From positions 124,001-188,000 of IMG/VR virus record IMGVR_UViG_3300045973_000169: 64,000 bases of DNA, one strand, 5' to 3'. Under the pieces are notes generated by a model. The model saw nothing but the letters and a program-made list of their open reading frames with translations, had not been told where the DNA came from and did no database searches. The position numbers and the translations under genes were made by a program. Each line of letters starts with the position of its first letter. Within the stretch, counting starts at the first letter, position 1. Below are positions 41,301 through 61,494 of this stretch, one piece after another.

Positions 41301-42917
41301 AATCATAAAATTATATGGATGAACTGATTCTTCTAAGTCAAATGTAGGATCAAATGCAGAGTCATCATCTTTTTTAGACTTCATTCTTATTACATCTCTT
41401 ACTTTAGCCATATCACCAAGAGTAGTAACTGCTTGGATTTCTTCATGATATCTAATATACTGTATCTTTTCAGAAGAGTTATTATGGAAGTAAGGCATAG
41501 GATTAAATAGAGACATCTCAAGACTACAACCAATACATCCTGGGTGTCCTTCTATTGTATAAAGAGTATAAGTATCCATAGTAACAGGGACACAGTATCC
41601 TGATAATGATTCATGTCCACTGCCATATTGAGTAGCAAGGAACTTATTCTCTTTGCTTAGTTTATGAAATATATCTTTAGATCTTATGATATTAATTGGT
41701 ACATATTTGAACTGTTGTAAGATCCTAAATAGATTATCATTTATTCCATGTTCGCCTTGGAATATTAAGTTAAGTTTTATAATTGTTCTGTTAGTGATAG
41801 AAGTCATTTGTGGTCTTGACTCCATACCTAATAGTGGAACATTTTGCGATGATCTTAACTGAGATATAAGTAAATGAGTTGGAGGAATATCAAGCCATAC
41901 ATCACCAATCTTAACCTTGTCAGCATTATCAGGATTACTTAAGTCATATTGTGTCTGCCCTCTCTTCTTGTTGAAGATAGGTTTTAGTTGAGATAGGTGA
42001 TTATAAAGTAAGTCAGACATATTTGTTTTAGCATCTTCGAATGCTTTAACTCTTGTCTGTACTTCTTGTGTATGAACTCCAAACCCTTTTTGCCCTGCAC
42101 ATTCTTGTGCTCTACGGAATGCATCTTGAGTCATGGAACTATCCCTGTCAGGGTTATTCCAGTTAACATGGTGCATAAGCACAGCACCAGTTTTAACCTG
42201 TAGAGCTTCCAAGTCAATCGCAGGGTTACCAAGGCCAAAGTCGATTTTATAACTTTGTACAGGACGTGGACCTATATCGTCATAGCCTAAATCACTAGGA
42301 ATAATTTTAGGGTATCCATTAGGATATACATCATTAGTGTTTCTTAGTGCCTGAGCATTAAGTAACATTTTCTCTGTAATTCTAGCTTGTATATTAGAAT
42401 AAGGATCAGACTGTCTAATGATTAGATAATCTTTATCACCTTCATGTCCAGCTTCATAATAGTATTCATTTTCATCACCCATTAAGGCTTTACTATTCTT
42501 ATAAGCTTTCCCTGTCTCAAAGGCATCGATTTTTCTTAAACGACCTTCATCAAAACGAGTTATTCTACCAGTAGAATCTTTTACACCACCAGGAGAGTCA
42601 CCGTCCTTAATCCATATCATTTCTTTTACTGCCTGTCCTTGCTCATTAACAATATCTCTGTCTAATGTAATAAGAGGAATATTAAACTTATTATCATAAG
42701 TAGGAAGATAGTTATCACCATAAGCTAATACAGGATCACTAATTCTAGGGTCACCAAATCTTTGGATAGCATCAAATTCACTTTTTTTATTATCTTTTAG
42801 ATTGGCTAACTTTTTATCATAATCATCAAAGTTAAACCCAAGTTTTTCTTTATCAAAAAATGGGATATTACTTATCAGTAAAAGTTCTTCTGTAGAAAGT
42901 CCATCGCAAGCTGACAT
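35316..42917 (-). CDS. Giant baseplate hub protein: N-terminal thermonuclease-like domain, hub domain, C-terminal lytic transglycosylase (SLT)
   Basis: SLT: IQRESGWNPKA, RGLMQIN, FDPKTNIDYGVKYL, AYNAG. Hub: GMRICVKLGY...VFIGTIT...IEGRG and GTLILRGNSKIEPYD...VETVIHKF...GFTT. SNase: DGD...RL..IDA.E. Confidence 0.8.
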   Translation of the reverse strand: MSACDGLSTEELLLISNIPFFDKEKLGFNFDDYDKKLANLKDNKKSEFDAIQRFGDPRISDPVLAYGDNYLPTYDNKFNIPLITLDRDIVNEQGQAVKEMIWIKDGDSPGGVKDSTGRITRFDEGRLRKIDAFETGKAYKNSKALMGDENEYYYEAGHEGDKDYLIIRQSDPYSNIQARITEKMLLNAQALRNTNDVYPNGYPKIIPSDLGYDDIGPRPVQSYKIDFGLGNPAIDLEALQVKTGAVLMHHVNWNNPDRDSSMTQDAFRRAQECAGQKGFGVHTQEVQTRVKAFEDAKTNMSDLLYNHLSQLKPIFNKKRGQTQYDLSNPDNADKVKIGDVWLDIPPTHLLISQLRSSQNVPLLGMESRPQMTSITNRTIIKLNLIFQGEHGINDNLFRILQQFKYVPINIIRSKDIFHKLSKENKFLATQYGSGHESLSGYCVPVTMDTYTLYTIEGHPGCIGCSLEMSLFNPMPYFHNNSSEKIQYIRYHEEIQAVTTLGDMAKVRDVIRMKSKKDDDSAFDPTFDLEESVHPYNFMIEHEKQLHAYNVNHNAPSEINIFKIDNPFSDKHWELMQQSAGKRFTENDCIQLIAASSITENAHSVSLSYSNNFAWTPVLEHAIPTAQFIGPGETQVSVNFKTTDIEAVRQVLRSYKESITPDRFGNFENRFLVQTPILDLADANILTIQNLVVSSVDGKPHLSDVNLIFSKTIFESIARADNDPVKFDNYWGLKRITHLLDMPEYQDMAKDMEKLERKDSMLYKVRNSASVDIDGLSQRFAADLNKALDEISKTKGMQTTETPKSFYESRDSVTQNVNGQHAVDRLQWKQAKLAESISNSADGIDGAFVNNVVSNFNALQKKWEAEHPGLVYSAPGEVQIELDLTSLVVKSESDKGRLKKVLSNFNTYYMLVNGYVATFDLNGISLGELEFLKGEFLKRGFKVGGDSKQLSVSKMPADVNALTKETVTSTAVLDKVITEKMREKIKVDLQAGVLLAKPYAAHRWFNRVDNFISYNKMFSNSVGYWYSQNRLRMMGDEVSTLKTEMDFIGDYMTDTDAYKTVYIKDTWRGLQEEMIGKENSCLNIGRTLAIPSMRKDTTSFASDSRNPINDKSGNRAGLFYPILKNDGQPVTKDFALNKFSTCMFNEHHFKGDPAIVKYMKESFAGNVNSLKNPYDPTDVFDNNMGSRISSVYDDNGRSMGVLTSDGILHKPSATSMKNLHAPLSNQKVNEKQEDYAKKFLSAQICHKTISSKPGGVTGASYKDVNAPDVTPSVKPKSVTPSISNEKQWAKLEEKKILLAMHESVNDTKLWKENNAKLIALRAKYNTTGISDTLPANYIETAGEEIDESTENYLLQQVYNSEAITIGIQNAYPTYKIYIIHDNLTDYKYKALDDYWDFRLLQDLMVIRDRNNPAHILKCRVVVDPRKTTTSAMYDSRYGYKGVNQVTGQPQMITETRNQDDESKINTEEMYSFMGGRSPLRQGMRICVKLGYHSDPRYLDTVFIGTITNLSAAGMGMYEIEGRGDGRELATPSSIQNSSLSGSNFSDLISQMLRSNPSIIHFGRMFGSHIEQFSRRNKNLMNFIMSRANITGLIGTGTSALVTGGTFAGAAAIGMIGASPLAAAAVGTSVGALAYASFGAEGDYGRKMIEAGKMTLFRESCKGNERFSTTFSNLYGRLRGDLFNADKATTQLFRHMADTLENGHNPIDANIFAFDIWASASGSNVTLKANNQRTVWDVLRDIQRIYPGYALDVRPYGSRSTLFLGDPDFHYFRTDDPLLAMAPSFIERSDATRESGNNNDRYRKAIMDYSPRRDTLGNIDPETLSTGILPMVPFQKHHIATSWDNIIYNGVRATPERGWNSVVISKSSDGSGKPEEYVANADIFNHALRRKFAVIDWTNDERLSQQYALGLLKEGVERLYGGTLILRGNSKIEPYDKIYICDKVSKMYGWVQVETVIHKFDSEMGFTTHIVPNMVCKINDTAYSTAGDLRRKYIIGKVSNYWNERGAAGLAIDATSLVLGATTGPWTSLGFSLVANGLLEANKHFAQARENETFVNKYNGLPTDTLDALNKFNWAENVVEWKYSVYADTALAYAGKTAAVVGSSGAKRGLVAAGNSVVQSGRYVFSDVFAGAVKTVFRRITPGEYLSNLMPKKVPDFLNRWATQTADYTRELKAAAVDAALAAETIVDKQVIASMEKILAKKETAWKDLSKSQKDLLKDTKINVNTEKEYEVLLNKMKPKGLFGGKYSAGTKAVGSKLIEGGKKLLGGPLARNVSMLLALSVVMELPSIVEMFAIEAATKGNIVVISPIWFKDSMLMPGLEGYRNNDMWMHMKGMVINAKDAFNEAYSSLSDYEPVKLAADILDPGIQFTGNAFASTPSGSMKLKSYSITEEIVRQDSMFNQLKPMVDEALSKLNGTKKYILEPEVVYGLIQRESGWNPKAIGVQDKNDRGLMQINGKAHPSMDGTHGKDPFDPKTNIDYGVKYLFDLIQTENGDVSRAVSAYNAGHGPQFMKNTDHINAVLSYYWQFKKELGKV

Positions 42918-42920
42918 TAA

Positions 42921-45900
42921 TTAACCTCTGTATTGGTGCATATCTGATTTATAAGGATCAGTCCCATCCGAACGAACAGAGACTGTATTGTTAAGTCGTC
43001 CACCGAAAGCAGCGGAGATAGATGAAATTGAATCATTATGGTTTTCTCGTCTGTCTGTTAATAAACCCATGTGCATATTATTCCCCATAGATGATCCCAT
43101 CTGTCTTGGTGTTCCCATATATCCTCTATGTGAATCTCCAAATGATGGATTAGATACAGAAGGAAGATCATTTATATCTTCTGGAGTCCCATCCCCACCA
43201 AGTACATTTAGTGCAGTCATTGCAACTAAACCTGCTCCAAGAGCAAGTCCAACTTTCCCTGGAGTAATTTTACCCATAAGATTTCTTACTTGCTCTGCTC
43301 CATAAATTTCTCTCTTAGATATCCCTTTTACAATAGATCCATGTAGTTCAGGATTAATAAATGACTCATGACCTAAGTGTCTCTGTAAGTTTGAGTCTCC
43401 AAGAAGACCTTTAAAGAATCCTTCTTCGCTATCTCTATGTTGTCTTATAACTGCATCATAGCTTTCAGAAGCAGAGAAGTGACCTGTCTTCTTTAGGTCT
43501 TCTATAAAGTCGAAATAACTATGAGATGTAGTATATCCCATATTCTTAAAAGCTTCGGTTTCATTTGTGAATGTCATTCCTTTTGTCTTCTCTACATAAG
43601 CAGCAGCTCTAGTCTTAGCTAGTTCTGGAGTAAACCCTGGAAGTAACTTTAATGCATTCTCTACCTCAGTTGCTCCTTCACGCTTAAACATTGTATGTAT
43701 ATTAGTTAATGTTTCGAATTCTTTCTTAACGTTATTCTTTGACCCTTCACGTAAGAAAGCAGGAACTTCACCATTCCTATTCTGTACTGCATTTAATGTA
43801 TTGTATAGATGTAATGCACCAACTTCACCTTGTAACTCTGCAAACCCAGTTAGAGCTTTCTCTTTAGTTAGCTCTCCCATGTTGGCAACCATGTGATCTA
43901 TTTTGTTGGTTACACCAAGCATCTTCTCTACGTGCTTTGAAGATATAGACCCCTGGACAATTTCTTTAGCAGGGATATCTATTGCATGAATCATTGCATT
44001 CATCTGTTGTTCTTCAGATAGAGATGAATTTCCAATAATCTTGCTCATCATTGCATTAGTCATCTCTTTGGTTCTTACATGCGCTGAACCAGTAGTTCGT
44101 TTAGTTAACCAAGCTGCAGTAACAGATTCTTTTTCAGAATATGCCATAGCCTTAGTCAAATCATCTAATCTGTCTGCATGTGGGAGGAAGTAATTCTTAG
44201 ATTCATTATTGAAAATAGCCTGTAATGAATTCTTCTTATTTTCTTTTATCGCATTGATAACATCATGTGACATGCTTTGTTCTTTTAAGATTCTATCATA
44301 TACATTAGATCTGTTTTGAGTATGGAATAAGAATTTAGCAAATGCAATATCACCGTCATTATCAGCATTCATTAATGTTCTTAGGCGATGTCCGAATGCT
44401 ATAAACTTACCACCTTCGACATATCCTTTATCTGTAGCAAATGTGAAAGATAAAGCTTTAGAAGAAGAATAGATATTAGGGAAACGGTCTACAAATGTAG
44501 ACTGTCCCGCTCTCTCTATTAATGAAGCTGCTTTATCATGTTGTCCACTTTGGACTAACGAATGTAATAAGTCATAATCTTTAACAGATTGTTGAGCTAT
44601 ACTATGACCTACTTGTTTAAATTTATCTCCTGAAGCTATATCAGCATAATGCTTTTCGAATATATTCCCTTTACCAAATCTATCTTCTAAGAAAGAACTA
44701 ATTGTTTTATTATTATCCTTAGCTGTTATATATGATTTCTGTAATTCATCAGCGATAGAAGATGCATATGTTTCTTTGTCAATTACAGTAGTGTTACCAA
44801 ATAGATGGTCTAGCTTAGATCCTTCTTCAATACTGCCAATTAATTCTTTATTATTAATAAGATGAGTATCGGCAAATACTTTATCTAGTGAAGCTCCCTC
44901 AACTTGGAAAGCGCCTCTTCTTAAGTATCCTTCTTTAGATGCCATATTACCAGTCGCTCTAATATCAATTAGCTTCTGATAGTTACTACTGCTAATCACT
45001 CCACCATTATTCTTTGCATCAACTAATATCTGTGTTTCTAATCTAACATCTCTAGAAACAGCTAACCTTTCTTCGTCATCTAAGTATTGTGACTTCTGAT
45101 AAAAATCTCCAGATCCGAAATAAGCTAATCTCCCATCTTCAGTTGCAACACCAAATCCTTTGGCATTAACATCTGGGTTAAGAAATGATTTAGTCATTAA
45201 ATAAGGATCATCTATATTGCCGCCTTTGATTATCTTACCATCGGCAAGCATCTCTTCAAGCCCTTCTTTATTCAGGACTTTAACTCCAGTCTTCTCCATC
45301 TGTCCAGCTAACTTAGGATCTTTCATGAAGTTCATATACATCTGACCTTCAGATAGAATCTTCCTTGAATCAGTTAAACTACTTCCTGCAAGCTCTTCCA
45401 TTACTTTACTTGGAAGCAGATATGGCATATCATTGACACCCATTCTATAAACATTATGTCCTATCCCTTGAGTATATAAACTCTCTTGAGGAAATATAGT
45501 TGACATGATATGGAACTGATTTATATTCTTAGTTTTATCACCAAGGCTCTGTAAATGATCTGTCATTAAATCAGCAGCATCATTATAAGAGATATCTTGT
45601 GAGCCGCCTCTCATATGTCCTAGTAATCTAGTCATTAAGTTTATCTGTTCTTTCATCGGGCCAGCCCCTTGGTCGAACTGTAATCTCCCTTGTCGTGCTA
45701 GCTGAGTAAGATTCCCAGTAAATCCTCCTACATATTTAGATAAACTTTTTGTAAGGTTCTCATTTAATACAACATCTTTTTCTGCAGCATAAGCGTGTCC
45801 AGCTACCATTGACTGTAATGTAGTTAACATACTCCCTGCGCCTTTACCTGCAATTATACCATCAATCCCATCTTTACCTATAGATGAAGGAAATACTTTC

Positions 45901-47900
45901 TTGAAGAAATCGAGAGACATATCGAAACTAACATTCTTGCCATACAGAGCAGCTGTTTCTTGTGGCATTAATTGAGCAGCACTTCTTAGATCATGATAAG
46001 TTCCTACTTTAGTAAGGGCCTCAACACTTTGACCATAGAATGTTTTCTCAATTGTTCCTTCTCCGAATCCTCTTAATGTTCTTGCAATATCTTCTTTAGT
46101 CTGGATAACCTTAGTATTTGTTGTAACTAAACCATTAGAATGAGACATAGCTCTATCATATGAAGCAGCAGTATCTATCTGATTATTGGCAGTACCTAAC
46201 CCAACTACAGTCCCAGGTCTTAGTTCGATCCTTTCAACTTGGCTTAATGTTTTTGTATCATTATATAGGTCAAATAGAGTCTTATCACTGTGTGATTCTC
46301 CACCGATTATATATGTAGGATTCATTAATTTAGTCATAGCCTGTTTTTCACTTGGTAATCCACCCCAAGTATATCCAGTCTTTGCTTTCATCTCTATGGC
46401 TCTAGAAACCCTCATATTATCTTTTAAACCAGGGGCGAATTGGATAACCTCTTCTGTATGTGGATTTATTACCCCTAGCATTGTTGCATGCCCTTGGTCA
46501 TAAACCTGTCCATAAGCTAAAGGATTAGTCCCTTGAGCTAAATGACTCCAAACTAAAGGTAGGTTCTTATCAATATTTTCACCAAAACGTCCATGGAATT
46601 TAAAGTCTTTCATAGATTTGAGTGAGTCGATACCATTCCCTTTAGTCATGGTTGGGAAGAATGTAGATGTCCACATAGCCCCTTGACTCTGAGAAACATT
46701 ATATCCAATGAATTCATTTATCTGTTGTTGTATTGGAGAATGGATACCTCTAAATTTATTATTAGCATTACCTCTTGCTACTTCATTCATTCCAGCTACT
46801 GCATTAATGGCTTCTGGTTCTATTGAGTGTAGACTATTTAATGAAACATTAGACTCCATCGCTCCCCTAAGTCCAGCATTTTCCATTTCATGTAAACCAT
46901 AGATATCATTCTTTACTGTACGCCCTAACCTTTGGATCTTCGCCGGTGAGTTCCCTTCTGCCCACAATAGATGACTGCTAAGGTTTTTAAATAGTTGTTT
47001 GATGCCATGCATCTCATGGAAATCTTTAACTATTCTTTCAGCATTAGTCTTGCTCTCAATCATCTTTACATGAGCAGCAGCATCTTTCCCTTTAGTCCCT
47101 TTTCTTATAATATCATCATAATGGAGAACATCTCTTACATCTCTGGCATTCCCAGAGTTAGCTGTAATTAATGCTTTCTGATTATTAGAAATCATATCTA
47201 AGACATATTCATTATAAGACATGAATTCAGATCCAACTACATTCTTACCTTCAAGTGTTGGTCTCCTAAAGTAAGGAGCCACATAATGTGCTCCTTCTTT
47301 ATTTCTTACAATCCAAGCTCCAGTCTCTTCGTCGAATTTTGCTAAAGGAACTTCTACGCTATGATTACCTATCTTTACACTTAAAGATGTACTAGCTCCA
47401 ACAGCATCTTCTCTCGTAGCTGTAATCCCTAGTTTCTTTAAGTTTTCTAATACCTTAGACTGGACATCTACATTATCAATAGAATAGACACCTTTGTTTA
47501 GGTTAACTCCATGGACAGTAGATCCATTAGAGAATCTTGCTATTTCTTCAGCGGTTATATCAATTCCAGTCTCTTTGAGTCCAACACTGTTTATGCTATT
47601 AATCTTCTCAATCATAGAAGTGTCTCTATGAGCATAAGTAGCTTTCTTCATCTCCATCCCACGCTTTAAGCCTGTGTCTATAGAGTCTGCTATATTAGAT
47701 ATACGTCTCTGTAATGGGGTTTGACTTGGGTTAGTTAATGGCATAACCTTATCTAATATATTAGTTAGTTGCCCACCTAACCAACCTTCTGGCTCTCTAT
47801 TAACTTTATATAAAGTATATGCTGAAGCACCTAGTATCCCAGTCATCCCTATCTTCGGGACGATTGAATCATTGTATTGTTCATAAGGTCTATTAGACAT
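42921..47900 (-). CDS. Putative single-chain two-barrel (beta/beta'-like) virion RNA polymerase
   Basis: NADNDGD (aa 1178-1184) preceded by DRFP (R1139) and KEGYLR (K989); Q-x6-H (Q1316); upstream beta-like KDNMRVS and K-x4-H-x2-R (K631). Confidence 0.72.
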   Translation of the reverse strand: MSNRPYEQYNDSIVPKIGMTGILGASAYTLYKVNREPEGWLGGQLTNILDKVMPLTNPSQTPLQRRISNIADSIDTGLKRGMEMKKATYAHRDTSMIEKINSINSVGLKETGIDITAEEIARFSNGSTVHGVNLNKGVYSIDNVDVQSKVLENLKKLGITATREDAVGASTSLSVKIGNHSVEVPLAKFDEETGAWIVRNKEGAHYVAPYFRRPTLEGKNVVGSEFMSYNEYVLDMISNNQKALITANSGNARDVRDVLHYDDIIRKGTKGKDAAAHVKMIESKTNAERIVKDFHEMHGIKQLFKNLSSHLLWAEGNSPAKIQRLGRTVKNDIYGLHEMENAGLRGAMESNVSLNSLHSIEPEAINAVAGMNEVARGNANNKFRGIHSPIQQQINEFIGYNVSQSQGAMWTSTFFPTMTKGNGIDSLKSMKDFKFHGRFGENIDKNLPLVWSHLAQGTNPLAYGQVYDQGHATMLGVINPHTEEVIQFAPGLKDNMRVSRAIEMKAKTGYTWGGLPSEKQAMTKLMNPTYIIGGESHSDKTLFDLYNDTKTLSQVERIELRPGTVVGLGTANNQIDTAASYDRAMSHSNGLVTTNTKVIQTKEDIARTLRGFGEGTIEKTFYGQSVEALTKVGTYHDLRSAAQLMPQETAALYGKNVSFDMSLDFFKKVFPSSIGKDGIDGIIAGKGAGSMLTTLQSMVAGHAYAAEKDVVLNENLTKSLSKYVGGFTGNLTQLARQGRLQFDQGAGPMKEQINLMTRLLGHMRGGSQDISYNDAADLMTDHLQSLGDKTKNINQFHIMSTIFPQESLYTQGIGHNVYRMGVNDMPYLLPSKVMEELAGSSLTDSRKILSEGQMYMNFMKDPKLAGQMEKTGVKVLNKEGLEEMLADGKIIKGGNIDDPYLMTKSFLNPDVNAKGFGVATEDGRLAYFGSGDFYQKSQYLDDEERLAVSRDVRLETQILVDAKNNGGVISSSNYQKLIDIRATGNMASKEGYLRRGAFQVEGASLDKVFADTHLINNKELIGSIEEGSKLDHLFGNTTVIDKETYASSIADELQKSYITAKDNNKTISSFLEDRFGKGNIFEKHYADIASGDKFKQVGHSIAQQSVKDYDLLHSLVQSGQHDKAASLIERAGQSTFVDRFPNIYSSSKALSFTFATDKGYVEGGKFIAFGHRLRTLMNADNDGDIAFAKFLFHTQNRSNVYDRILKEQSMSHDVINAIKENKKNSLQAIFNNESKNYFLPHADRLDDLTKAMAYSEKESVTAAWLTKRTTGSAHVRTKEMTNAMMSKIIGNSSLSEEQQMNAMIHAIDIPAKEIVQGSISSKHVEKMLGVTNKIDHMVANMGELTKEKALTGFAELQGEVGALHLYNTLNAVQNRNGEVPAFLREGSKNNVKKEFETLTNIHTMFKREGATEVENALKLLPGFTPELAKTRAAAYVEKTKGMTFTNETEAFKNMGYTTSHSYFDFIEDLKKTGHFSASESYDAVIRQHRDSEEGFFKGLLGDSNLQRHLGHESFINPELHGSIVKGISKREIYGAEQVRNLMGKITPGKVGLALGAGLVAMTALNVLGGDGTPEDINDLPSVSNPSFGDSHRGYMGTPRQMGSSMGNNMHMGLLTDRRENHNDSISSISAAFGGRLNNTVSVRSDGTDPYKSDMHQYRG

Positions 47901-47902
47901 TG

Positions 47903-50900
47903 TTAATACCCATAACTAAACTGTGAGTGGATTAGATCACCATATTGAGACTGTGATCTTTGTAAGTAATCTGCATGTCCATTTGTTTCGATATCTATAC
48001 TTGTCATAGTATTCGGTGACATGGTTGGGAACATCTGTATATTTGAAGCTCTATCATCTTGTATTATATATGAAACTATTCTGTTAATAGTTGAATTTGT
48101 TGTTGATCCTGCTGACTTTAATTGGTGTGATGCTAAATTAGCACCATGATCAAATACTGCTTCTCTCAATTTATTATCAAAGAAACCATAATCTTGTATA
48201 TTCTCTCCACCTTCTTTAAGTGCTAATAACTCTACATTTTCAATATTAACATCAGGGGAATAGCCTATCCAATCTTCTTTAGGCATATCATGAGACTTCA
48301 TATATTCTCTTACATACCTAGCTCTTATCCAATCAGCTTTATTAGCATTTCCTCCAGTTTCATTCATATACATCTTACTCTCTTGACCTGACATTCCCCA
48401 ACCTTCGGTTTCCTGTAGGTTCATATAAGCTTGTTGTACATTTATATCATCTGAAGATTCAGCTAACTTCTTGCTCCATATTGCATTGTATAATCTTCTA
48501 GCACCTCTAGGGATATACTTCATGATCTTCCCGCGTTTCTTTGGGTCAGGCTCATTAGCAAATCTAGAGTAATAAGCTCTTTCATTTTCAGGCAAAGCAG
48601 CTAATTCATCTCTTGTATTATCATCAGTTGGGTCAGCCCCTATCATTGTAGAACGCCACATATTATGATAGTAAGTTGCATCTTCTTCATTGCCAGTTTT
48701 AGATGCTTGTACTGCTAACATCTTATATTTGACATATTTAAGAATATCCCAATACTCTTGGTTTTGTCTTCTTTCAACAGTGAATCCTGGTAGGTGATCT
48801 ACACCAAACCATTGGTGCATAAAAGAAGATATAGCAGGAGCCAATAGATGTTGGATAGGGTGTGACCATAACTTAACTTCACGGTTAAATACTTGGTTAG
48901 TTAAGTAATTATCTAAATAGTCTTTTTTAGGGATTAACTTATTAGCCCAGAAGGTCTGGTCATTAGAAATAGTCCCCCAGTATTTAGCCATTGCTCTCCC
49001 AGCATATCCAACTTCATCCTGTTGCATATTGAATTCTGAAAGATTTCCAGTATTAGTTCTTGCTGCTCCTGCTTCTATTAGATCTGAACTAAGATCTCCT
49101 ATTAATGCTTCAGTCCCAGATTCAGAATTATTCATCTGATCTGCAGATGGAGCTTGAAAAGAAATACTCTGACCAATGCCAATACGTGATGCTATAATTT
49201 GTGATGTCCTTGCTCTTGCCTCTTCTGCTGCTCTTGCTAATTCTGATGTTGAACTAAACTTTTCTTTTAATAGTAAATTAGCTCTTATATCCGCTTCTGA
49301 GGTTGAAACACCAGCGATCCTATAGCGAGTATCATCACCTTCAAGAGTAAAGCTTCCTGACTCATCTACGGAGCTTACAGTGCCATTAACTGTATCAGTA
49401 TTTAGTCTATAGTCGTACTCTGATTTAGATGTATAAAGTTTATCTTTGAGTTGTCTTACTTGGTCTAATGTTTCATAGAATCTTTGCTCATCGCCTAAAG
49501 ATAATTGGTCTTGTAATGTTTGATGCATTACTTTATGAGATTGATTTCTAAACTCTTGTGTAAATGGAGCTATGGACTGTAATATCTCTAGCTTTTCAGG
49601 ATCAGGATATTGTTCTAGTTCTTTCCCTTTTAATTCTGGGTAAAGATTCTCCCAACCTTTTCTTGTAGAATATAACCATCCTAAAGGAGTATTATCAAAT
49701 GTAGTCCCATGAGTTACATCATTAGTATATCTTTTAAATGCATCTTTCTTAGTGCTTTCTTGAGGGATCCAAGATACACCATTAAGTTCATTTGGTAAGT
49801 CATTGATTTTCCAATCCTTCATAGGATATGGGAATATACGTCTTAAGAATTCTCCACCTACTCCAGAAATATCTCCTAGCTTCCATCCCCACATCTGTTG
49901 AGCTGGGTTATAGAACTCTCCTGCATTTTCTTTATAAGGAACAAACTGATCTGTAGATTCACCAGTTATATATTGTTTCGCAGTCTCATATGCGAATCCA
50001 GTGAAACCAATTAAGTCATGGTATTGTCTAGACCATCTATCCATAAGATCTTTATTAGATCCTTCTGACTGCATCCCAATAGCTCTAGCTAATTCCATAT
50101 TAGATGCACCAGCGCCCCTCATCCCAATTGTAGTAGGAGTATAAGGTTGAGGTTGTGTCCCTTGACTAGTTAGTTCATGATATACTCTAGTTGGTTTAAT
50201 TAAACGTCCTATTGTTGCTGCTATAGGTTGACCAATTAAAGGGATGTTTGCCCCAAGTGGAGCTGACTCATATACTGGCTGATCTAACTTATGATAATTC
50301 TCTAAGATGTATGGTTTATATAATCCAAATGTTGCATTATGTAAAGCTCTCTCCCAATAGTTAGGATATACAACTCCTCTATTCTCATAGTCAGATTCAA
50401 TTACACTAAACATATGCTTTCTAAATTGGATAGGAGTTCCACCCTCATAAGGAGAAGAAGACAATAACCAACCTCTATACTTACGAACTGCTACTTCCTT
50501 ATCACCAGCATACTCAGCTTTTCTTTCTTGATATGTTTTATTAGAACCTAAAACCCCAGGGAGAAATGGTAACATTGGTACCATCATAGCTGCGAAAATA
50601 GCCTTCTTAGGATTTCTTAGTGCCCAACCTGCATATCTTTCAAAGTGAGTTTTAGTTAAAGCACCAGCATAAGCTTCTGTTCTTAGAGCATTTTTTATGA
50701 AACTATTCTTACCGAACCTAGTCCCAACATTTCTTAGATATTGCTTTATACCAACTGGGCCTTTATTGTAAAGGTATTCTCCAATTTTAAAGAATGAAGT
50801 TGCTGTTAGTGCAGGAGCTAATATGCCTAACCTAGTAGATCCTGGAGCCACTTTTTCTTGCTTCTTTGTCAGTCTTGTGAATCCAGTTATATCTGATATC

Positions 50901-53749
50901 TTACTATAAAGTAATGTAGCTCCTTCGAAAGCTTTGATAGGCCCCATAGTTAAAGGTCCACGACCAGTAGGACTCATTGTTATTGCACCTAGTAAATGGT
51001 CAGTAAGTCTGAAAGCTTCCCATGCAGCCATTACAGGCAGTGCACGTTTAAGCCCAAACTTAACTCCATACTCTAAGAAGCCCATATTATGAGTATAAGT
51101 TGCTAATCCTAAATGAGGTCTATTGATAACTCCAAGAGCTTTACCCGCTAATCCTTTGATAAGACTATTTGATGACTTTAATTTAGATGCAACCTTATCA
51201 AGTTTATTGCTATCAATCCCAAAGAATCCAAGTTCAAAAGGAGATTCCATAAACCTATTCCATCTATCAAGCATGAACGTTCTAGTAGGAACACCTATCT
51301 CTCTATATCTATTTTTTATATTCTGATATGTATGTCCTGGAAGAAGTATCTGATCTACTTGAGCCAAGGTTTTTGTATTAGCTGAACCTTTAGGCATCCA
51401 GTCACTAAATATATTAGCGCTCTCTCCTACACCTTTGGGTCCTAACTCAAGATTAAATTGGGTTTTCTTATACATACTCCAGAGCCATTTCCACTCTGGG
51501 TTATTTTTAATAGATGCAGGTATCTCTTGTTTCTTCATCCATTCAGCACTAGAAGGCCAAACTGCTCTTCCTGATTTAATTTGTTGATGTTGCATTTCCC
51601 AATAAGTAGTTGGATTTGTTATATGATTTTCACCATATCCTTTCCCGAATCTATTTATTGAGTTAACTCCTGACATGTTAGCATGTCTTGTATTCCTTAG
51701 CTTAAATGTAAATGGCAGAGTTAGTTGTTCAGTTTTTTGTAATACTCCACCTTCAAGTGTGTCTTGAGCATAAACAATCATTGCTCCATTATCTGCTGTA
51801 GCAAATCTTATTTCTTTAGAAACAATCTTCTTGGCACTTGAACTTATTTGGTCTTTCGGTGTAAGCCAAGACTCAAGTTTATTATAATCCTGTTCTGGTA
51901 TTAGTCTTTTCGAGTTCTCTAATATATCAGTAAAGTCAACTCCATGGACATAATCTCTTGTCCCATCTATCCCAATAGATTTGCCATCTCTGATTGTTTT
52001 GAAGACCTTATCATATTTTCTAATCTTCCCTTCAATAGCGGCTCCTTTTTTATCACCACGGAACCAATCTATAGTACCACCTACCTGTAAGACTCTAGTG
52101 ATATTATGAGAACCTTCGATTGTCTTAAGTCCTCTAAACATAGTATCAGTGATATTCTTTCTTGAGAAATCAAATGTTGCTTTATTGTTTAAAAGTCTTG
52201 GAGACATGATCTTACTATAAGCTCCAACTCCATATAAAAATGCACCAACCCCAGTTACTCCTTTAGCAATCGTAGCAACCTGAACAAATGAGTTATGTTT
52301 ATCTTCAAAGAATGTACTGTAATTAGGAGCATGTGGGAGCCCAAGATTGTTAATCTTCATCTTATCAGAGAAAGGACTTAATGAATCGTCCCCTCTTAAT
52401 CCATAGGTAGCTAACAGTCCTAGCCCTACTATGGTACCCATTGCACCCCATCTTAACTTATTAGCCCCTTTAAAGGCTTCAGTCATCTGACCTGCCATTT
52501 TAGAACCTTCAAACATAGATGGATATTTTGAGTAAGATTCTAGTATTGGCTTTAATTGGTGAGTTAGATCTTCTATTATTGGGCTAAGTTTATTTTCTGA
52601 TTGTAATAATTTAGATAAGTTGCCATGAACATCGCCTTTAATTATCTGGTCAACAGTTATTCCTGCCTTATTTAACTGGCTAAGAATAGCTTTCTCTATT
52701 TGTTTCTCAGTACTTACATCTAGTCCTGCAGCATGGCCTTGGACTAAATCTTTTCCAAAGTGTTTAGATACAATAGCAGCAGCCTTCTCCGCACTATATC
52801 CACCAGCATACTGGAACTCTTCAAAATTTAAAGGTACACGTCCAGGTCTCCCTGTCGCTGCAGCAGCAACTGGATTATATCCAATCCTAAACATATTACC
52901 AAGCTCAGGATTCTCTTTCCCAAGCTGGTATAAGAATGCTTTGTATGCTCTCTCAACCTCATCTGTTTGGATTATCCCTTGCTGATATGCAGTATAAAGA
53001 GCTTTAGCTTCATCAGCAGCTCCCATCTTAACTAGCTCTGACATATATAAGTTAATATCGAAATAAGGATTCCATGCTCCTAATCTAACTGGAGCTTCCT
53101 TAGTTCCCATCTTAAGCATATTAACTACATTCTTCTTTAAGAATCCTTGGAACTGTTCATATGTAAAGTCACCAGCATACTCGACGCCTTCTTTCTTAAA
53201 GATGCCTTCTAGTGCTCCAGCTTTACTCTTTATTAATTTACCATCTTTCACACTAAAGTCTTTAGATTTTAATCCTAAGTCTAAGTTTCCTTTAGCAATA
53301 AATATATGCCCACCATTCTCAGTAGGGAGTTTAAATAGAGCATCCATTTGAGATACTTGGCTTGGCAGTATTCTCTTCTTATACCAATCTAATTTCCCAC
53401 CCTGTAACTTAGACCAAGATGCACCAAATAAACTTTCTAGATCTCGCTCTGAATGTTTTGGAATTAGATAAGATTCTACCTGTCCGAACCCTTTAAGATG
53501 TCTTACATACTTAGAGTCTGGATTAACAAAGTCTGGGAGTTTATGTCTATTATTAAAATCAATCCCATAATGTTTAATAGTATTAGTCTGACCATCATGA
53601 ATAGCAAACTGAGTTACATCAACGTGACCGAAGTGTAAGAATGCATCAGTAGGATTTAATACAGTTGTACGACCAAGCTTATCATAAGCCTTAGTTAAAC
53701 CAGTATTTAATCCTATTGTTTCAAAGTCTACTATTAATCTTCTAGACAT
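47903..53749 (-). CDS. Tape-measure-like giant protein with N-terminal DEDDh exonuclease domain
   Basis: Directly follows the tail chaperones; Gly/Ala hydrophobic helices; N-terminal VDFET, AWNPYFD and HAAGLD motifs. Confidence 0.7.
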   Translation of the reverse strand: MSRRLIVDFETIGLNTGLTKAYDKLGRTTVLNPTDAFLHFGHVDVTQFAIHDGQTNTIKHYGIDFNNRHKLPDFVNPDSKYVRHLKGFGQVESYLIPKHSERDLESLFGASWSKLQGGKLDWYKKRILPSQVSQMDALFKLPTENGGHIFIAKGNLDLGLKSKDFSVKDGKLIKSKAGALEGIFKKEGVEYAGDFTYEQFQGFLKKNVVNMLKMGTKEAPVRLGAWNPYFDINLYMSELVKMGAADEAKALYTAYQQGIIQTDEVERAYKAFLYQLGKENPELGNMFRIGYNPVAAAATGRPGRVPLNFEEFQYAGGYSAEKAAAIVSKHFGKDLVQGHAAGLDVSTEKQIEKAILSQLNKAGITVDQIIKGDVHGNLSKLLQSENKLSPIIEDLTHQLKPILESYSKYPSMFEGSKMAGQMTEAFKGANKLRWGAMGTIVGLGLLATYGLRGDDSLSPFSDKMKINNLGLPHAPNYSTFFEDKHNSFVQVATIAKGVTGVGAFLYGVGAYSKIMSPRLLNNKATFDFSRKNITDTMFRGLKTIEGSHNITRVLQVGGTIDWFRGDKKGAAIEGKIRKYDKVFKTIRDGKSIGIDGTRDYVHGVDFTDILENSKRLIPEQDYNKLESWLTPKDQISSSAKKIVSKEIRFATADNGAMIVYAQDTLEGGVLQKTEQLTLPFTFKLRNTRHANMSGVNSINRFGKGYGENHITNPTTYWEMQHQQIKSGRAVWPSSAEWMKKQEIPASIKNNPEWKWLWSMYKKTQFNLELGPKGVGESANIFSDWMPKGSANTKTLAQVDQILLPGHTYQNIKNRYREIGVPTRTFMLDRWNRFMESPFELGFFGIDSNKLDKVASKLKSSNSLIKGLAGKALGVINRPHLGLATYTHNMGFLEYGVKFGLKRALPVMAAWEAFRLTDHLLGAITMSPTGRGPLTMGPIKAFEGATLLYSKISDITGFTRLTKKQEKVAPGSTRLGILAPALTATSFFKIGEYLYNKGPVGIKQYLRNVGTRFGKNSFIKNALRTEAYAGALTKTHFERYAGWALRNPKKAIFAAMMVPMLPFLPGVLGSNKTYQERKAEYAGDKEVAVRKYRGWLLSSSPYEGGTPIQFRKHMFSVIESDYENRGVVYPNYWERALHNATFGLYKPYILENYHKLDQPVYESAPLGANIPLIGQPIAATIGRLIKPTRVYHELTSQGTQPQPYTPTTIGMRGAGASNMELARAIGMQSEGSNKDLMDRWSRQYHDLIGFTGFAYETAKQYITGESTDQFVPYKENAGEFYNPAQQMWGWKLGDISGVGGEFLRRIFPYPMKDWKINDLPNELNGVSWIPQESTKKDAFKRYTNDVTHGTTFDNTPLGWLYSTRKGWENLYPELKGKELEQYPDPEKLEILQSIAPFTQEFRNQSHKVMHQTLQDQLSLGDEQRFYETLDQVRQLKDKLYTSKSEYDYRLNTDTVNGTVSSVDESGSFTLEGDDTRYRIAGVSTSEADIRANLLLKEKFSSTSELARAAEEARARTSQIIASRIGIGQSISFQAPSADQMNNSESGTEALIGDLSSDLIEAGAARTNTGNLSEFNMQQDEVGYAGRAMAKYWGTISNDQTFWANKLIPKKDYLDNYLTNQVFNREVKLWSHPIQHLLAPAISSFMHQWFGVDHLPGFTVERRQNQEYWDILKYVKYKMLAVQASKTGNEEDATYYHNMWRSTMIGADPTDDNTRDELAALPENERAYYSRFANEPDPKKRGKIMKYIPRGARRLYNAIWSKKLAESSDDINVQQAYMNLQETEGWGMSGQESKMYMNETGGNANKADWIRARYVREYMKSHDMPKEDWIGYSPDVNIENVELLALKEGGENIQDYGFFDNKLREAVFDHGANLASHQLKSAGSTTNSTINRIVSYIIQDDRASNIQMFPTMSPNTMTSIDIETNGHADYLQRSQSQYGDLIHSQFSYGY

Positions 53750-54321
53750 TATAAGTATCCATTCTCGTCATCACTCTTCTGTAATGCAATTTTAAGAGAC
53801 TCAAGCATTTCTTTAGTAATACCTTTAACCCCAGTTTTAATCTTAGGATTACTTTTTACATTTTCTTGTTTAATATGTTCTCTTAATTTAGTTGTATCTA
53901 TTAGTGGTTGATGGTCTACCATCTCTGCAAATGCTAATAGCTCAAGTAACTCATTAAGAGTCTTAAGCTTTAGTTCATCTAATCTATAATTTGGTTGGGT
54001 AGAAACGATCTTTGCATAAATAGGATAATATGTATTAGATGTTAGAGTCTTACGGATATTATCTATCTCATCAGGAAACTGTTCTTTCTTTAATATTACT
54101 CCGGATAACTTAAATGAAGTATAAACTATTAATGGAATAGTCCCTGCAGAAAGATCTTTATCTGCATATTTATTATCTGTTATTAGATTAAATATATATT
54201 CTTCTAGATAAGGATTACTTTCTTGTTTAAGAGCAAAGTAGAACCTGTCTGCTTCTTCAGCAGATATAGTCCTAAACTCTATATCTAGATTATCTATAGT
54301 AGGAATTTTAAAATATTTCAT
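53749..54321 (-). CDS. Putative tail assembly chaperone (second paralogue)
   Basis: Position before the tape-measure-like gene; FRTIS..E...YI...LSAG...I...S pattern shared with 55103-55507. Confidence 0.55.
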   Translation of the reverse strand: MKYFKIPTIDNLDIEFRTISAEEADRFYFALKQESNPYLEEYIFNLITDNKYADKDLSAGTIPLIVYTSFKLSGVILKKEQFPDEIDNIRKTLTSNTYYPIYAKIVSTQPNYRLDELKLKTLNELLELLAFAEMVDHQPLIDTTKLREHIKQENVKSNPKIKTGVKGITKEMLESLKIALQKSDDENGYL

Positions 54322-54335
54322 GAATGGCTATATCC

Positions 54336-55061
54336 TTATTGAATATCTTTTAGTATTAGTTCTATATTTTTCATTTCCCAATAAGGAATTTCTAATAACT
54401 TAATATTGTTATCTTTACAATACTGCTTTTTAGTACTATCTCTTTGTTGTAAACTTACAAGAGCCTCATTACCTCCCCAGTATTTAACAGACCTATAATG
54501 TTGCATCCCATTAAACTCTATACAAACCTTATGGTTTGGTAGGTAGAAGTCAAATCTCAATGGGAGCCTTTGGTCTTTAAAGAATAAATTATCAAATGTT
54601 TTTTGCTGAATATAATCAATGTAATTATTCTCTAGCCATTTTTTAATTCTTATTTCGCCTTTTGAAATATTACACTTAGGACATCCTTGTCCTTTTAAGT
54701 GATCATTTGGGGTTTGCCAAAAACTCCCATGCTTATGGCATATAATACAAACCTTAATTTTGCTTTGTTTGTATTCAACTAAAGAATAATCAAATTTATT
54801 TTCATGGATAGTTTTTGCTTTTCCTAAGAACTCAGGCTTAGACATTTTTGAACTATTCCCAATTATAGAATAATAACACTTTGGGCAACCATTTCCTTTT
54901 AAATGATTCTCAGGGGCCTGTTCAAATTCTCCATGCAAATTACAAACAATAAGAACTTTTGTTTTATTATTTATATATTCAACCTTAGAGTAGTCATATT
55001 TAAAATTATGGATTTGATTAGCTTTATCAATAAGGTCATTAGCAGTTAATCTTTTAGGCAT
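54336..55061 (-). CDS. Putative homing endonuclease (DUF723-type Zn repeats + Vsr/DUF559-like nuclease)
   Basis: IHNFKYDYSKVEY...C..HG.F.Q.P..HLKG.GCPKC twice, then RFDFYLP...CIEFNGMQH; clear paralogue of 5451-6188. Confidence 0.8.
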   Translation of the reverse strand: MPKRLTANDLIDKANQIHNFKYDYSKVEYINNKTKVLIVCNLHGEFEQAPENHLKGNGCPKCYYSIIGNSSKMSKPEFLGKAKTIHENKFDYSLVEYKQSKIKVCIICHKHGSFWQTPNDHLKGQGCPKCNISKGEIRIKKWLENNYIDYIQQKTFDNLFFKDQRLPLRFDFYLPNHKVCIEFNGMQHYRSVKYWGGNEALVSLQQRDSTKKQYCKDNNIKLLEIPYWEMKNIELILKDIQ

Positions 55062-55102: not shown

Positions 55103-55507
55103 TTAACCTTTTACCTCAAGAATCAACTCTAATGCTTTTGCAGGATCTTTGAAGAAATTTGACATTACAAGGATTTGATATACTAAAGTAAGCGCAACTC
55201 CAGCCTCTAAAGTATTTAGTGCGATTGGGTCCATCTTAGGCCATACGATACATGTGTTAAGAATATAATCATGGGTCATATCTTTATCTAGTTTCTTTGC
55301 TCTGATATCTCTGAACTCAGCCCAAGAAAGTTTTTTAAACATATAAAAGGAATAATCATCTTCATTACCTAAAAATGTAGCATAAAGCTTTTCATTTCTA
55401 GCTTTAAGTTTTTCGAATGTAGCTCTATCTAATTTGTTATAAGTAACCTTTTCCCAGTTGATATCTCCATAAAAATCATGAGTAGCTACTGCTGGTGTAT
55501 CTTCCAT
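55103..55507 (-). CDS. Putative tail assembly chaperone
   Basis: 134 aa after the tube genes; FKKLSWAEF...ILNTCIVWP...LEAGVALTL...SNF. Confidence 0.6.
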   Translation of the reverse strand: MEDTPAVATHDFYGDINWEKVTYNKLDRATFEKLKARNEKLYATFLGNEDDYSFYMFKKLSWAEFRDIRAKKLDKDMTHDYILNTCIVWPKMDPIALNTLEAGVALTLVYQILVMSNFFKDPAKALELILEVKG

Positions 55508-58296: not shown

Positions 58297-58929
58297 TTAG
58301 GCTTCTAGTTTCATCATTCTTGAAGCAGCAGTTGCAACATAAGTATAACGTTTTTCAATGTTAAGCTCATCAATTGAAACTCCGATTCCGTCATTAAGAA
58401 TCTGAAGACCCATTACTCTCCATGCCATTTTGTCACCTTGTTCGTTTGTACCAACAACAGTAACATTGAATGGTGGAATTTGGTCAGCATAGAAAGGAGT
58501 AGTAGCGGCCCATAAATCTTGCTTTGCTAATAGAGCAGCTTGTGTAGTTGTGGCGGTTGCACCAGCAGCAGTTGTATTAGGATTGCTATATTCATTTCTT
58601 GTACTACCAGTTACTTGCTGAACAATCTCATCTTTACGAACCCAAATTTGTTGACGTGCTGGATTTGTTTGAATACTAGAAACATACTCAAGCAAAGCAT
58701 CATATCCTAATTGAGCTAGAATAAATGATCCGCCGATTCCCCTTTTACCTTTAGGGATTGCGATTGGACTTTTCTTACCCATTACATAAAGTGGGCCAGC
58801 TTCTCTATTGATACCAAGAGTGAAAGACATACACTCTCCGACATATTCGTCACCGAAGATAACTACGGTGTCTGCTCCAGAGAAAACAGTTGAAAGTCCG
58901 GTTTTAGAATTATACAGATCTGTTGCCAT
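58297..58929 (-). CDS. Major tail tube protein
   Basis: 210 aa after the sheath, strong GGAGG RBS, own terminator; FSGAD...REAGPLYVMG...YTYVA. Confidence 0.85.
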   Translation of the reverse strand: MATDLYNSKTGLSTVFSGADTVVIFGDEYVGECMSFTLGINREAGPLYVMGKKSPIAIPKGKRGIGGSFILAQLGYDALLEYVSSIQTNPARQQIWVRKDEIVQQVTGSTRNEYSNPNTTAAGATATTTQAALLAKQDLWAATTPFYADQIPPFNVTVVGTNEQGDKMAWRVMGLQILNDGIGVSIDELNIEKRYTYVATAASRMMKLEA

Positions 58930-58983: not shown

Positions 58984-61494
58984 TTAGATTGCAGTTCTTT
59001 CGATTACAGCATCTATATCAACTTGTGTTAACTCTAGTGCTGGGTTTAGACTACATGTTAATAAGAACTTACCGATTGCATTTGCAGATTGAACAATCTG
59101 AAGATCCCATTTTGCATTTGAAGCTAGGTAACCTTGAGCAACATCGGTTGTGAATGATTCAGCAAGACGTGTTCTAGCTGCTTCGTAAAGTAAACGTGAA
59201 ACAGGTTTACCGATAAAGTTAACTAGGATTGAACGCTTACCTTCGATGATATACTTAATGGTTCTTGTAGTAGAAATTAAGAAGTATGCAGAGTTGCTTC
59301 TTGCTACAGCATTTGCATTATTAATAACCCAACCAAGACCTTTTTCTCTAGTGATAACAATAAACTTAGCAGCAGCTAGGTCATTGTATAATGCTCTTGT
59401 AACAACAACACTTACAGTAGCATTTGAAGTAGTACCAATCTTAGAGAATGATAGCCCTTCATTGTGTGGCTTACCTGCTAACATACCTAATGCATAAATA
59501 CCACAACTATCAATATAAGCGTTACCTGCACCCTTATTTGAGAAAGTAATTAGACCAGCTCCAACACAAAGGAACTTACCTAAATCAATTACTTTATTGT
59601 ATGTATCAATAGCTTCGATACCATCAACAAATCCTTCATCTGTCATTAACAGACCAAGTGCTGGATCAGCATATTGGTTAGTAGTTGTATCGGTTAGATA
59701 GCAACGATTATAATGAGCAGACCCTGTTAAAGTAGCTTCACCTAATAGACCAGTTCCACTAGCAGTAACATCAGTGATATTACCATTAACATCAGATTTA
59801 TATGTAGGCAATGTTCCTGCCCAAGCCTTAATTGCTCCACGACTAAAGTTAGCTGCTTTTAAAGCACTAATGTCTACATTCATACCAGCCAGTGGAGTGT
59901 TATATCCAACAGCAGCATTATTACAGAAATTAGCAAACATATAACCGAAGTGAGCTAGATAGAATCCAGGTTGTTTTGTATCAGACCATGAGTAAACAAA
60001 GTTGTCGCCTGCATCAACTTCTTTAACATAACCAATACCAAGTTCACGATTCTCTATTTTATTAAAGATAGCAGTCACAGTTGTAATATTAGCAATTGCA
60101 GGAGCAAGAACTTTTTGTAAGCTCGGAGCACTCTGATCGCCAATAGAAAGGGCTGTAGTCAATAGGATTGTTTTATTAGTTACATCAACTGAACTATAGA
60201 AGTAAGTTCCTGTTCCAATTGTTACATATCCAGAAGTAAGTAGTCCTGTAGTTCCAACTACACCAATTAATTTATTTGCATTTGCTCCAGAAGCAGCAAC
60301 TGAAGTAATATTAATAACTGGCTTTGCAACTGTTAACCTATAGTCTACTCCGTAAGGAACTAGATCAGTATAGGTCATGAAGTTGTGGTCAGTCCCATCA
60401 AAGATATCAACTGTACCAGTGATAGGCCATGTAGCAGCAGCATCAACTACGATTGAAGAATCGCCAACCTGTACATTTGCCTTTAGTAAAGTCGATTCAA
60501 TGTATTGTTTAGCATAGGTATCAGTAGCATTATAATTAACACCACCAGCAGCAATATAGTCAGGAGTATACATTTCGATGTCTAGTAATGCATTTCTCAT
60601 CTTACCGTAAAGTTCACGGTTAGTTAAGTTGAGTTGTGAATCACCAGCGACTAAAGTAGACCCAACCAGAGTAGCTGTCGAGTTAGTTGAGAAAGAAGTT
60701 CCAAGAGGCTCAGTTAATGCAAATGTTCTAGCCGTTACATTAGCTGCCTGATTTGAATAATTAACAAAAGAAACTGTAGTAATTGCTCCAGTAACTTCTG
60801 CAACTTTTAACTTTCCTTTTAGTGGAAATGAAGCAATTGAATCAACAACTGCAAGGACAGTATCATTACCAGCCACAGGAGCTGCTAACTCAAGACCTAC
60901 CCCAATTACATCCTGTAGAACAATCTCACCCATGCTAATAGGATTAGCAAGAGGATCATTATCAATATCAACACCATAAAGAGAAAGCTCATCGCCATCG
61001 CCAGCAGGAGTTGAATTAACAATAAAGTAACCAGCGTCTAATCCAGTAAATGAACTATAAACAAGTCTTTTATTCTTATCCCAAATCTTTACACCAGCAC
61101 GATTAATTCCAGTATCTGCTGGTTGGTTATTTGCATAAATAAAGAAATCATTTTCAATCCCATCATATGCATCAATAGTTTCAAGTGAAAGTCCATAAGA
61201 AGTAATAAGTGAGGCTGGTACGCCACCTACTCTTAGAGTAACGAACTTAACGGTATTTTTCTTTCCTGCATCCATATATCCATCATAGAATTCAAATACG
61301 GATTTCATTAAAGGATTATCAGTACCATAAATAGCAGTAGCACCATCAACTGTATTTAACTGGACTGGAATCCTAGGCCCTTTGGTAGCTTGTCCAAGGA
61401 AGACAGCAAGCTCACCATCAGATGATCTGGTAGTAATGTCGTCTCCAAGGAAGACCGATACCCCAGATAGGTATCTAGGCGCAACTTTAAACAT
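58984..61494 (-). CDS. Tail sheath protein
   Basis: LSGVSV, FLGQATKGP..P, A..IYG, LRVGG N-terminus; C-terminal ISTTRTI...FIGKP...LNPALEL..V; precedes the tube gene. Confidence 0.88.
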   Translation of the reverse strand: MFKVAPRYLSGVSVFLGDDITTRSSDGELAVFLGQATKGPRIPVQLNTVDGATAIYGTDNPLMKSVFEFYDGYMDAGKKNTVKFVTLRVGGVPASLITSYGLSLETIDAYDGIENDFFIYANNQPADTGINRAGVKIWDKNKRLVYSSFTGLDAGYFIVNSTPAGDGDELSLYGVDIDNDPLANPISMGEIVLQDVIGVGLELAAPVAGNDTVLAVVDSIASFPLKGKLKVAEVTGAITTVSFVNYSNQAANVTARTFALTEPLGTSFSTNSTATLVGSTLVAGDSQLNLTNRELYGKMRNALLDIEMYTPDYIAAGGVNYNATDTYAKQYIESTLLKANVQVGDSSIVVDAAATWPITGTVDIFDGTDHNFMTYTDLVPYGVDYRLTVAKPVINITSVAASGANANKLIGVVGTTGLLTSGYVTIGTGTYFYSSVDVTNKTILLTTALSIGDQSAPSLQKVLAPAIANITTVTAIFNKIENRELGIGYVKEVDAGDNFVYSWSDTKQPGFYLAHFGYMFANFCNNAAVGYNTPLAGMNVDISALKAANFSRGAIKAWAGTLPTYKSDVNGNITDVTASGTGLLGEATLTGSAHYNRCYLTDTTTNQYADPALGLLMTDEGFVDGIEAIDTYNKVIDLGKFLCVGAGLITFSNKGAGNAYIDSCGIYALGMLAGKPHNEGLSFSKIGTTSNATVSVVVTRALYNDLAAAKFIVITREKGLGWVINNANAVARSNSAYFLISTTRTIKYIIEGKRSILVNFIGKPVSRLLYEAARTRLAESFTTDVAQGYLASNAKWDLQIVQSANAIGKFLLTCSLNPALELTQVDIDAVIERTAI

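Follow-up and report, generated by a model that had tools for sequence, protein, structure and literature searches.

The DEDDh exonucleases, relatives of DnaQ, include the ε subunit of DNA polymerase III (Pol III), RNase T, Exonuclease I (ExoI), ExoX, oligoribonuclease, TREX1 and TREX2, the N-terminal exonuclease of Staphylococcus aureus DinG, Cas2–DEDDh, Cap18 and DexA of phage T4. The enzymes that are known to us from phage particles are mostly of other kinds, namely hydrolases of the cell wall, RNA polymerases and enzymes that modify proteins. Tape measure proteins such as Pb2 of phage T5 and those of mycobacteriophages carry lytic transglycosylase or peptidase domains. The virion RNA polymerase of N4, Alt of T4 and polyvalent proteins are injected together with phage DNA, and the nuclease effectors of type VI secretion systems (T6SS) and extracellular contractile injection systems (eCIS) are delivered by contractile injection machines. 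Here, we describe a protein of 1,948 residues encoded in the contractile-tail module of an uncultivated phage, in which a putative DEDDh 3′–5′ exonuclease domain (residues 1–385) precedes a giant protein related to gp145, a virion protein of Bacillus phage 0305phi8-36. The gene lies on the minus strand of the stretch that was analysed (the window), 64,000 nucleotides corresponding to bases 124001–188000 of the 206,638-bp IMG/VR record IMGVR_UViG_3300045973_000169, which is complete by CheckV (GC content ∼33%).

Three motifs are found in the N-terminal part of the protein: IVDFET (Exo I, with D8 and E10), GAWNPYFD (Exo II, with N227 and D231) and HAAGLD (Exo III, with H339 and D344). The motif strings and the numbering of D8, E10, D231, H339 and D344 had been given in an original prediction made from the letters of the DNA, and both are exact in the translation of the open reading frame (ORF). 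The H-x4-D spacing of Exo III identifies the DEDDh rather than the DEDDy subtype. In a catalytically intact enzyme of this type D8, E10, D231 and D344 would act as metal ligands and H339 as the general base in two-metal-ion chemistry. Compared with the known DEDDh enzymes, the motifs are set further apart by an insertion of ∼130 residues (residues 64–195) between strand β3 and helix A and by the ∼110 residues that separate Exo II from Exo III. The exonuclease had been drawn at positions 52700–53749; this span does cover residues 1–350, but the folded domain extends to about residue 385 (nucleotide 52595).

The family to which the protein belongs is rare. A word-index search returned two homologues (59 and 46% identity), an exhaustive hidden Markov model (HMM) search of 1.84 billion representative proteins returned 19, and a search of IMG/VR with the longer alignment returned five loci, three of which were new. 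Nearly all of the homologues are 1,940–2,151 residues long. Three are short, and both of those that were checked (P0007 and P0021) end at contig edges; they were rejected as free-standing enzymes and are contig-end fragments. Among the 1.84 billion representative proteins no free-standing form of the exonuclease domain was found: it is always fused. When the full-length profile was used in a word-index search, one distant relative without the exonuclease (P0022) was gained but no further homologue that carries it. One homologue (P0013) is encoded on a contig of 401,713 bp, so that the family is also present in a genome of ∼400 kb; this protein contains an inserted nuclease-like domain (REase_MTES_1575/DUF559, E = 2e-24).

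Conservation was assessed over the first ∼385 residues of 24 sequences, with pairwise identities of 15–68% (median 24%). Apart from M1, D8, E10, H339 and D344 no column is invariant, while position 231 is always acidic (Asp in 22 sequences and Glu in the other two) and N227, E266 and L276 are each retained in 23 of the 24. The five motif residues are thus the most strongly constrained positions of the domain, as expected for an active-site signature, and the conservation that the original prediction had made a test of its assignment is borne out. Such a pattern also bears on whether the domain hydrolyses anything at all. It might be a structural module, or one that binds nucleic acid ends, for example capping or piloting the leading DNA end, with a DEDDh fold and no hydrolysis; the short charged N-terminal stretch of the relatives without exonuclease, strongly basic in P0022, may bind DNA, and dead DEDD-fold domains exist, of which Exuperantia and Maelstrom appear among the lower structural matches described below. 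Inactive DEDD domains, however, typically lose their catalytic residues, whereas here all four invariant columns other than the initiator Met are catalytic and the fifth position has an acidic residue throughout, with a median identity of only 24%. We consider a non-catalytic module quite improbable.

Two further conserved features lie between Exo II and Exo III. One is the near-invariant E266 and the other is a strongly conserved loop, TGRPG (residues 299–303), in which G303 is retained in 22 of the 24 sequences. Neither has an obvious counterpart in canonical DEDDh enzymes, and they may contribute to substrate binding or provide an extra metal ligand.

An AlphaFold model of residues 1–385 built from the 24-sequence alignment has a mean predicted local distance difference test score (pLDDT) of 90.9 and a predicted template-modelling (TM) score of 0.88; an earlier AlphaFold2 model from three sequences had reached a pLDDT of only 42.6. 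The model is an RNase H-like α/β fold with DnaQ topology. D8 and E10 are on the first strand (β1, residues 3–11), N227 and D231 are at the junction of strand 221–225 and helix 228–241, and H339 and D344 are at the start of helix 341–361, which are the canonical locations of Exo I, II and III. When the model was compared using Foldseek with the PDB, AFDB-SwissProt, AFDB clusters, BFVD and the ESM Atlas, all confident matches were DnaQ-type exonuclease domains, among them the exonuclease domains of the RB69 and T4 polymerases, TREX1/2, RNase T, ExoI, PARN/CAF1 and phage clusters of DnaQ and RNase_T; a few low-probability P-type ATPase entries appear in the AFDB-SwissProt list. The structural alignments cover only 165–190 of the 385 residues, yet they span the model from residue 1 to residues 357–373, and the ∼130-residue insertion is not shared by any of the structural neighbours found. 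A scan of 48,161 chains that is independent of Foldseek gave the same answer, with DEDD-superfamily domains filling all 50 top places. The comparison with DnaQ-like folds that had been proposed as a check thus yields a confident DnaQ-like model.

The relationship can also be followed at the level of profiles. Using the five RNase_T domains of Escherichia coli K-12 (DnaQ, Orn, ExoI, RNase T and ExoX) as the reference, an unmodified hhalign comparison aligned the Exo II segment only (WNPYFDINLY with HNAAFDIGFM of DnaQ; probability 13%, P = 0.002). With the insertion columns removed the probability rose to 80% (E = 1.3e-5, score 40.8), and the extended alignment pairs Exo I, II and III motif for motif; the highest score among 30 column-shuffled controls was 17.1. 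Conservation, fold and profile–profile alignment together uphold the assignment: an RNase H-like fold, interrupted by long insertions, that bears the DEDDh/DnaQ set of catalytic residues. Judged from its sequence, the domain is a previously unrecognised family within the DEDDh superfamily, set apart from the known enzymes by having no RNase_T, Pol-B-exo or Pol-A-exo HMM match and by never being free-standing: it is always the N-terminus of a putative virion protein of ∼2,000 residues and is followed by a predicted membrane helix.

The ε subunit is among the best structural matches, and the genome encodes a DnaE-like Pol III α subunit. Polymerases of family A or B were not detected in it, and searches with PF00929, PF03104 and PF01612 revealed no further DEDD exonuclease. 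Taken alone, these observations would suit an ε-like proofreading exonuclease for the C-family (DnaE-type) polymerase of the phage. The likeness to ε is, however, no better than that to ExoI, TREX1, RNase T or the DinG exonuclease, and in every homologue the domain is fused to ∼1,560 residues of a putative virion protein with a predicted membrane helix, encoded in the tail operon. A separate DnaQ would moreover be expected in the relatives that lack the exonuclease, whereas 0305phi8-36 has neither the fusion nor a PF00929 match. Proofreading is in our opinion a very improbable function. The DnaE-like polymerase itself (104715–109890, outside the window) is split into frames of 391 and 789 residues that are ∼1.6 kb apart, with an ORF of 247 residues between them that belongs to no recognised family; the split could reflect an intron, an intein, a mobile insertion or a two-subunit enzyme.

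The protein to which the exonuclease is fused has two relatives among cultured phages: tblastn retrieved only ORF145 of Bacillus phage 0305phi8-36 and gp35 of Acinetobacter phage ME3, both of which are annotated as virion structural proteins. The homology with gp145 (1,930 residues) consists of three collinear segments over residues 1060–1906, with E values from 1.5e-13 to 4.5e-5, and gp145 was identified in the virion by mass spectrometry according to the GenBank record of 0305phi8-36. Both relatives occupy the same position, between the chaperonins on one side and the tape measure and hub on the other, and share hydrophobic segments including a PFLPG motif with our protein, although ME3 gp35 has only 1,263 residues. 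The gene order in 0305phi8-36 is sheath (139), tube (140), tube paralogue (141), gp142, chaperonins (143/144), gp145, tape measure (146) and hub (147). By blastp, genes in the window correspond one to one to gp139, 140, 141, 142, 144, 145 and 147, and a 401-kb metagenomic relative keeps the same order.

The original prediction had described the carrier as a tape-measure-like protein. The N-terminal fusion to a giant tail-module protein stands, but its gene does not lie directly upstream of that for the hub: an ORF for a 1,659-residue protein intervenes, and the arrangement is equal in 0305phi8-36, ME3 and the 401-kb relative. In the published study of 0305phi8-36, too, the tape measure was assigned to a gene separated from the chaperonins by one other (PMC2147016). 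From homology and synteny our protein is the orthologue of gp145, and the positional tape measure is the product of the next gene, the 1,659-residue protein; no sequence similarity between the latter and gp146 was detected, so that the match is one of position. Across 18 homologues the carrier shows 30–63% identity, ∼150 invariant columns and lengths of 1,940–2,114 residues, and, as far as an alignment can tell, such conservation and near-constant length are atypical of a tape measure.

Neither gp145 nor the distant relative P0022 has the exonuclease. Both begin with a short charged stretch, which is followed by a membrane helix at residues 25–51. Since these relatives start near the membrane helix, the nuclease module of ∼430 residues has been added in one clade only, ahead of an N-terminal helix that is ancestral. 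The nuclease occupies the same end of the protein as the charged stretch of the gp145 family without exonuclease (residues 1–45 of P0022 and the N-terminus of gp145), which hints that this end contacts nucleic acid in all members of the family.

The hydrophobic, Gly-rich segment that had been noticed after the motifs is present at residues 434–451 and is a predicted membrane helix (Table 1). In all 18 full-length homologues the 20 residues that precede it carry a net positive charge (sum +61), while the 20 residues that follow are about neutral (sum +6 over the 18 homologues) and often open with an acidic cluster. By the positive-inside rule, this asymmetry suggests that, with the helix inserted across the inner membrane, the exonuclease would face the cytoplasm.

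The explanation that we favour, with a probability of roughly 60%, is that an active exonuclease is carried in the virion, is expelled from it, becomes tethered to the membrane facing the cytoplasm and trims free 3′ ends. It starts from what is observed in motifs, conservation, fold, fusion architecture and synteny, and its functional part (delivery, end trimming and degradation of host or defence nucleic acids) is plausible. For a partnership with the RNA polymerase, which the original prediction had also raised, no evidence was found, although no search aimed at it was made. Residues 1–385 would be a divergent but catalytically intact 3′–5′ exonuclease of the DnaQ/RNase T type, added, in a single clade of uncultivated jumbo and mega myophages, ahead of the membrane helix at the N-terminus of a giant gp145-like protein. 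By homology with gp145 the protein would be packaged into virions, where it would probably lie in or at the lumen of the tail and be incompletely folded. Contraction of the tail would then expel it, and its hydrophobic segments would enter the cytoplasmic membrane of the host. Because the exonuclease lies on the side of the first helix that carries positive charge, it would face the cytoplasm where the DNA enters and could there remove nucleotides from free 3′ ends, either those of the phage genome as it comes in or those of nucleic acids that belong to the host or to its defences.

Several points weigh against this explanation. At the sequence level the N-terminal domain has no match in Pfam, PHROGs, NCBIfam or PADLOC; PF00929 (RNase_T) gives none in the protein at E ≤ 1 and none genome-wide at E ≤ 10; and searches of the PDB sequences with the protein and with profiles returned only a coiled-coil design (E = 0.01), which we take as noise. 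A protein language-model atlas gave a best score of 0.60, which is uninformative. The Foldseek E values are modest (1e-4 to 1e-2) and the query-normalised TM scores are 0.3–0.4 and never above ∼0.43, which is explained by half of the model being insertion. Convergence of the five catalytic side chains on one two-metal site is suggested only by the motif-to-motif structural and profile alignments. The clade has no cultivated member, and the presence of the protein in the virion is argued from the homology of its C-terminal part to gp145. A folded domain of 43 kDa is too big for a tail-tube lumen of ∼4 nm, so that it would be stored unfolded or elsewhere, for example in the neck or head. Finally, bulk degradation is not a task for which one would expect a tethered exonuclease present in few copies.

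The lack of any HMM library match, together with the poor model first obtained from three sequences, is also what would be seen if the motifs were a chance resemblance in an unrelated fold. Conservation, fold and the profile–profile alignment with its shuffled controls all agree against this, and we regard it as hardly credible.

The size of the domain relative to the established dimensions of tail tubes leads to a different possibility, namely that the exonuclease is active in the cell that produces the virions, either while tails are assembled or late in infection, or is removed by cleavage before or during assembly, and is not delivered. The gene belongs to an operon of late structural genes, its translation is coupled to that of a chaperone-like gene, and it is only for the homologue gp145, which lacks the exonuclease, that presence in the virion has been demonstrated. 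On the other hand, the domain is in every case found fused to the putative virion protein and is never free-standing among the 1.84 billion representative proteins; it replaces the short charged stretch at the same end of the relatives without exonuclease, the charge asymmetry across the helix is conserved, and no conserved cleavage motif was seen. We judge an enzyme confined to the producing cell to be unlikely.

A more specific form of the delivered, membrane-tethered exonuclease is advanced here as a tentative and still doubtful proposal. The tail would deliver a pre-made, membrane-tethered 3′–5′ exonuclease effector to the DNA entry pore before any phage gene is expressed, which would make it a new class of virion-borne enzyme and the phage counterpart of the nuclease effectors of T6SS and eCIS. 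It might resect the leading 3′ end of the genome and so prime recombination, circularisation or replication. Alternatively, it might destroy host immune nucleic acids with free 3′ ends, such as guide or primer RNAs, multicopy single-stranded DNA (msDNA) or linear oligonucleotide signals.

The proposed protein has points in common with several described systems. Like the tape measures with enzymatic domains, it is a giant protein that is encoded next to the tail chaperones, has hydrophobic segments and an enzymatic module and is presumably expelled at infection; unlike them, it carries a nucleic-acid exonuclease where they carry a cell-wall hydrolase, and its carrier is not the positional tape measure. 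With the particle-delivered enzymes it shares the concept of an enzyme that acts before phage gene expression, although its delivery is only proposed. It differs from polyvalent proteins and injected enzymes in that a single enzymatic domain is borne by a conserved structural protein and would be held at the membrane by a helix instead of being released. A survey of polyvalent proteins lists no DnaQ-type exonuclease (PMC5512222), and a survey of jumbo phages reports no exonuclease domain in tape measure proteins (PMC7824862). Full-text searches of the literature, judged from titles and abstracts, gave no report of a DEDDh or exonuclease domain in a tape measure protein, and searches for an exonuclease in polyvalent proteins yielded no precedent.

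The tail module is read on the minus strand and comprises, from 5′ to 3′, the genes for the sheath (836 residues), the tube (210), a tube paralogue (421), a 464-residue protein, a chaperonin-like protein (134), an inserted HNH endonuclease (241), a 190-residue protein, the exonuclease-bearing protein, the 1,659-residue protein, a 2,533-residue protein with an SLT domain, small baseplate proteins and a gp6/J-like wedge protein. The start codon of the exonuclease-bearing gene overlaps the stop codon of the gene upstream (TAATG) and the next gene begins just past its own stop codon, so that it is part of a tightly coupled operon. The SLT lytic transglycosylase (residues 2415–2507 of the 2,533-residue hub protein, E = 3.5e-20) places the cell-wall hydrolase of the tail on the hub and not on the exonuclease-bearing protein. 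A mobile insertion is the probable origin of the HNH endonuclease ORF, which separates the two tail-chaperone-like genes; their counterparts in the 401-kb relative, for proteins of 132 and 190 residues, adjoin without it. Further away in the window are genes for a tail-fibre-like protein and a PhoH-like ATPase. Coordinates are listed in Table 1.

Table 1. Features of the exonuclease-bearing gene and of other genes in the window (positions are those of the window).
Feature	Position	Strand	Evidence
Whole gene: N-terminal putative DEDDh exonuclease module and gp145-like giant putative virion protein, 1,948 residues	47903..53749	−	
Predicted DEDDh (DnaQ-like) 3′–5′ exonuclease domain, residues 1–385	52595..53749	−	
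Exo I, IVDFET, residues 6–11, model strand β1	53717..53734	−	Invariant in 24/24; aligned to D-x-E of E. coli DEDDh domains
α/β insertion in the exonuclease core	53165..53560	−	Secondary structure of the model
Exo II, GAWNPYFD, residues 224–231, strand β4 and start of the next helix	53057..53080	−	WNPYFDINLY aligned to DnaQ HNAAFDIGFM
TGRPG loop	52841-52855	−	
Exo III, HAAGLD, residues 339–344 (H339-x4-D344), start of the last long helix	52718..52735	−	Invariant in 24/24
First hydrophobic segment, Gly-rich predicted membrane helix, residues 434–451, WGAMGTIVGLGLLATYGL	52397..52450	−	
Second hydrophobic segment, residues 491–509	52223..52279	−	
Third hydrophobic segment, residues 1050–1068, with conserved PFLPG motif, also in ME3 gp35	50546..50602	−	
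gp145-homologous region, residues 1060–1906	48032..50572	−	tblastn and blastp
Tail sheath protein	58984..61494	−	
Tail tube protein, gp140-like	58297..58929	−	E = 1e-26
134-residue tail chaperonin-like protein	55103..55507	−	Similar to gp144
HNH/homing endonuclease	54336-55061	−	phrog_559, E = 3e-61; treble-clef zinc finger
190-residue protein at the tail assembly chaperone position, translationally coupled to the exonuclease-bearing gene	53749..54321	−	
1,659-residue protein, positional counterpart of the gp146 tape measure of 0305phi8-36	42921..47900	−	
2,533-residue gp147-like baseplate hub protein, C-terminal SLT lytic transglycosylase	35316..42917	−	
2,170-residue tail-fibre-like protein	6441-12953	−	phrog_25191 and phrog_3904
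PhoH-like ATPase	701-2080	+	phrog_2765, E = 1e-99

The domain adds a sequence family to a well-known superfamily of enzymes and presents that superfamily in an architectural context that is new. As Pfam, PHROGs, NCBIfam and PADLOC do not detect it, the annotation of phages may systematically overlook fusions of this kind. If it is active, a DnaQ-type exonuclease in a virion protein of the tail module would add a nuclease to the list of enzymes that are borne by the particle. It would also offer a handle on the role of the enigmatic gp145-like giant proteins of jumbo phages of the 0305phi8-36 type, and on what becomes of the leading DNA end, and of the nucleic acids of the host, during the first seconds after infection starts.

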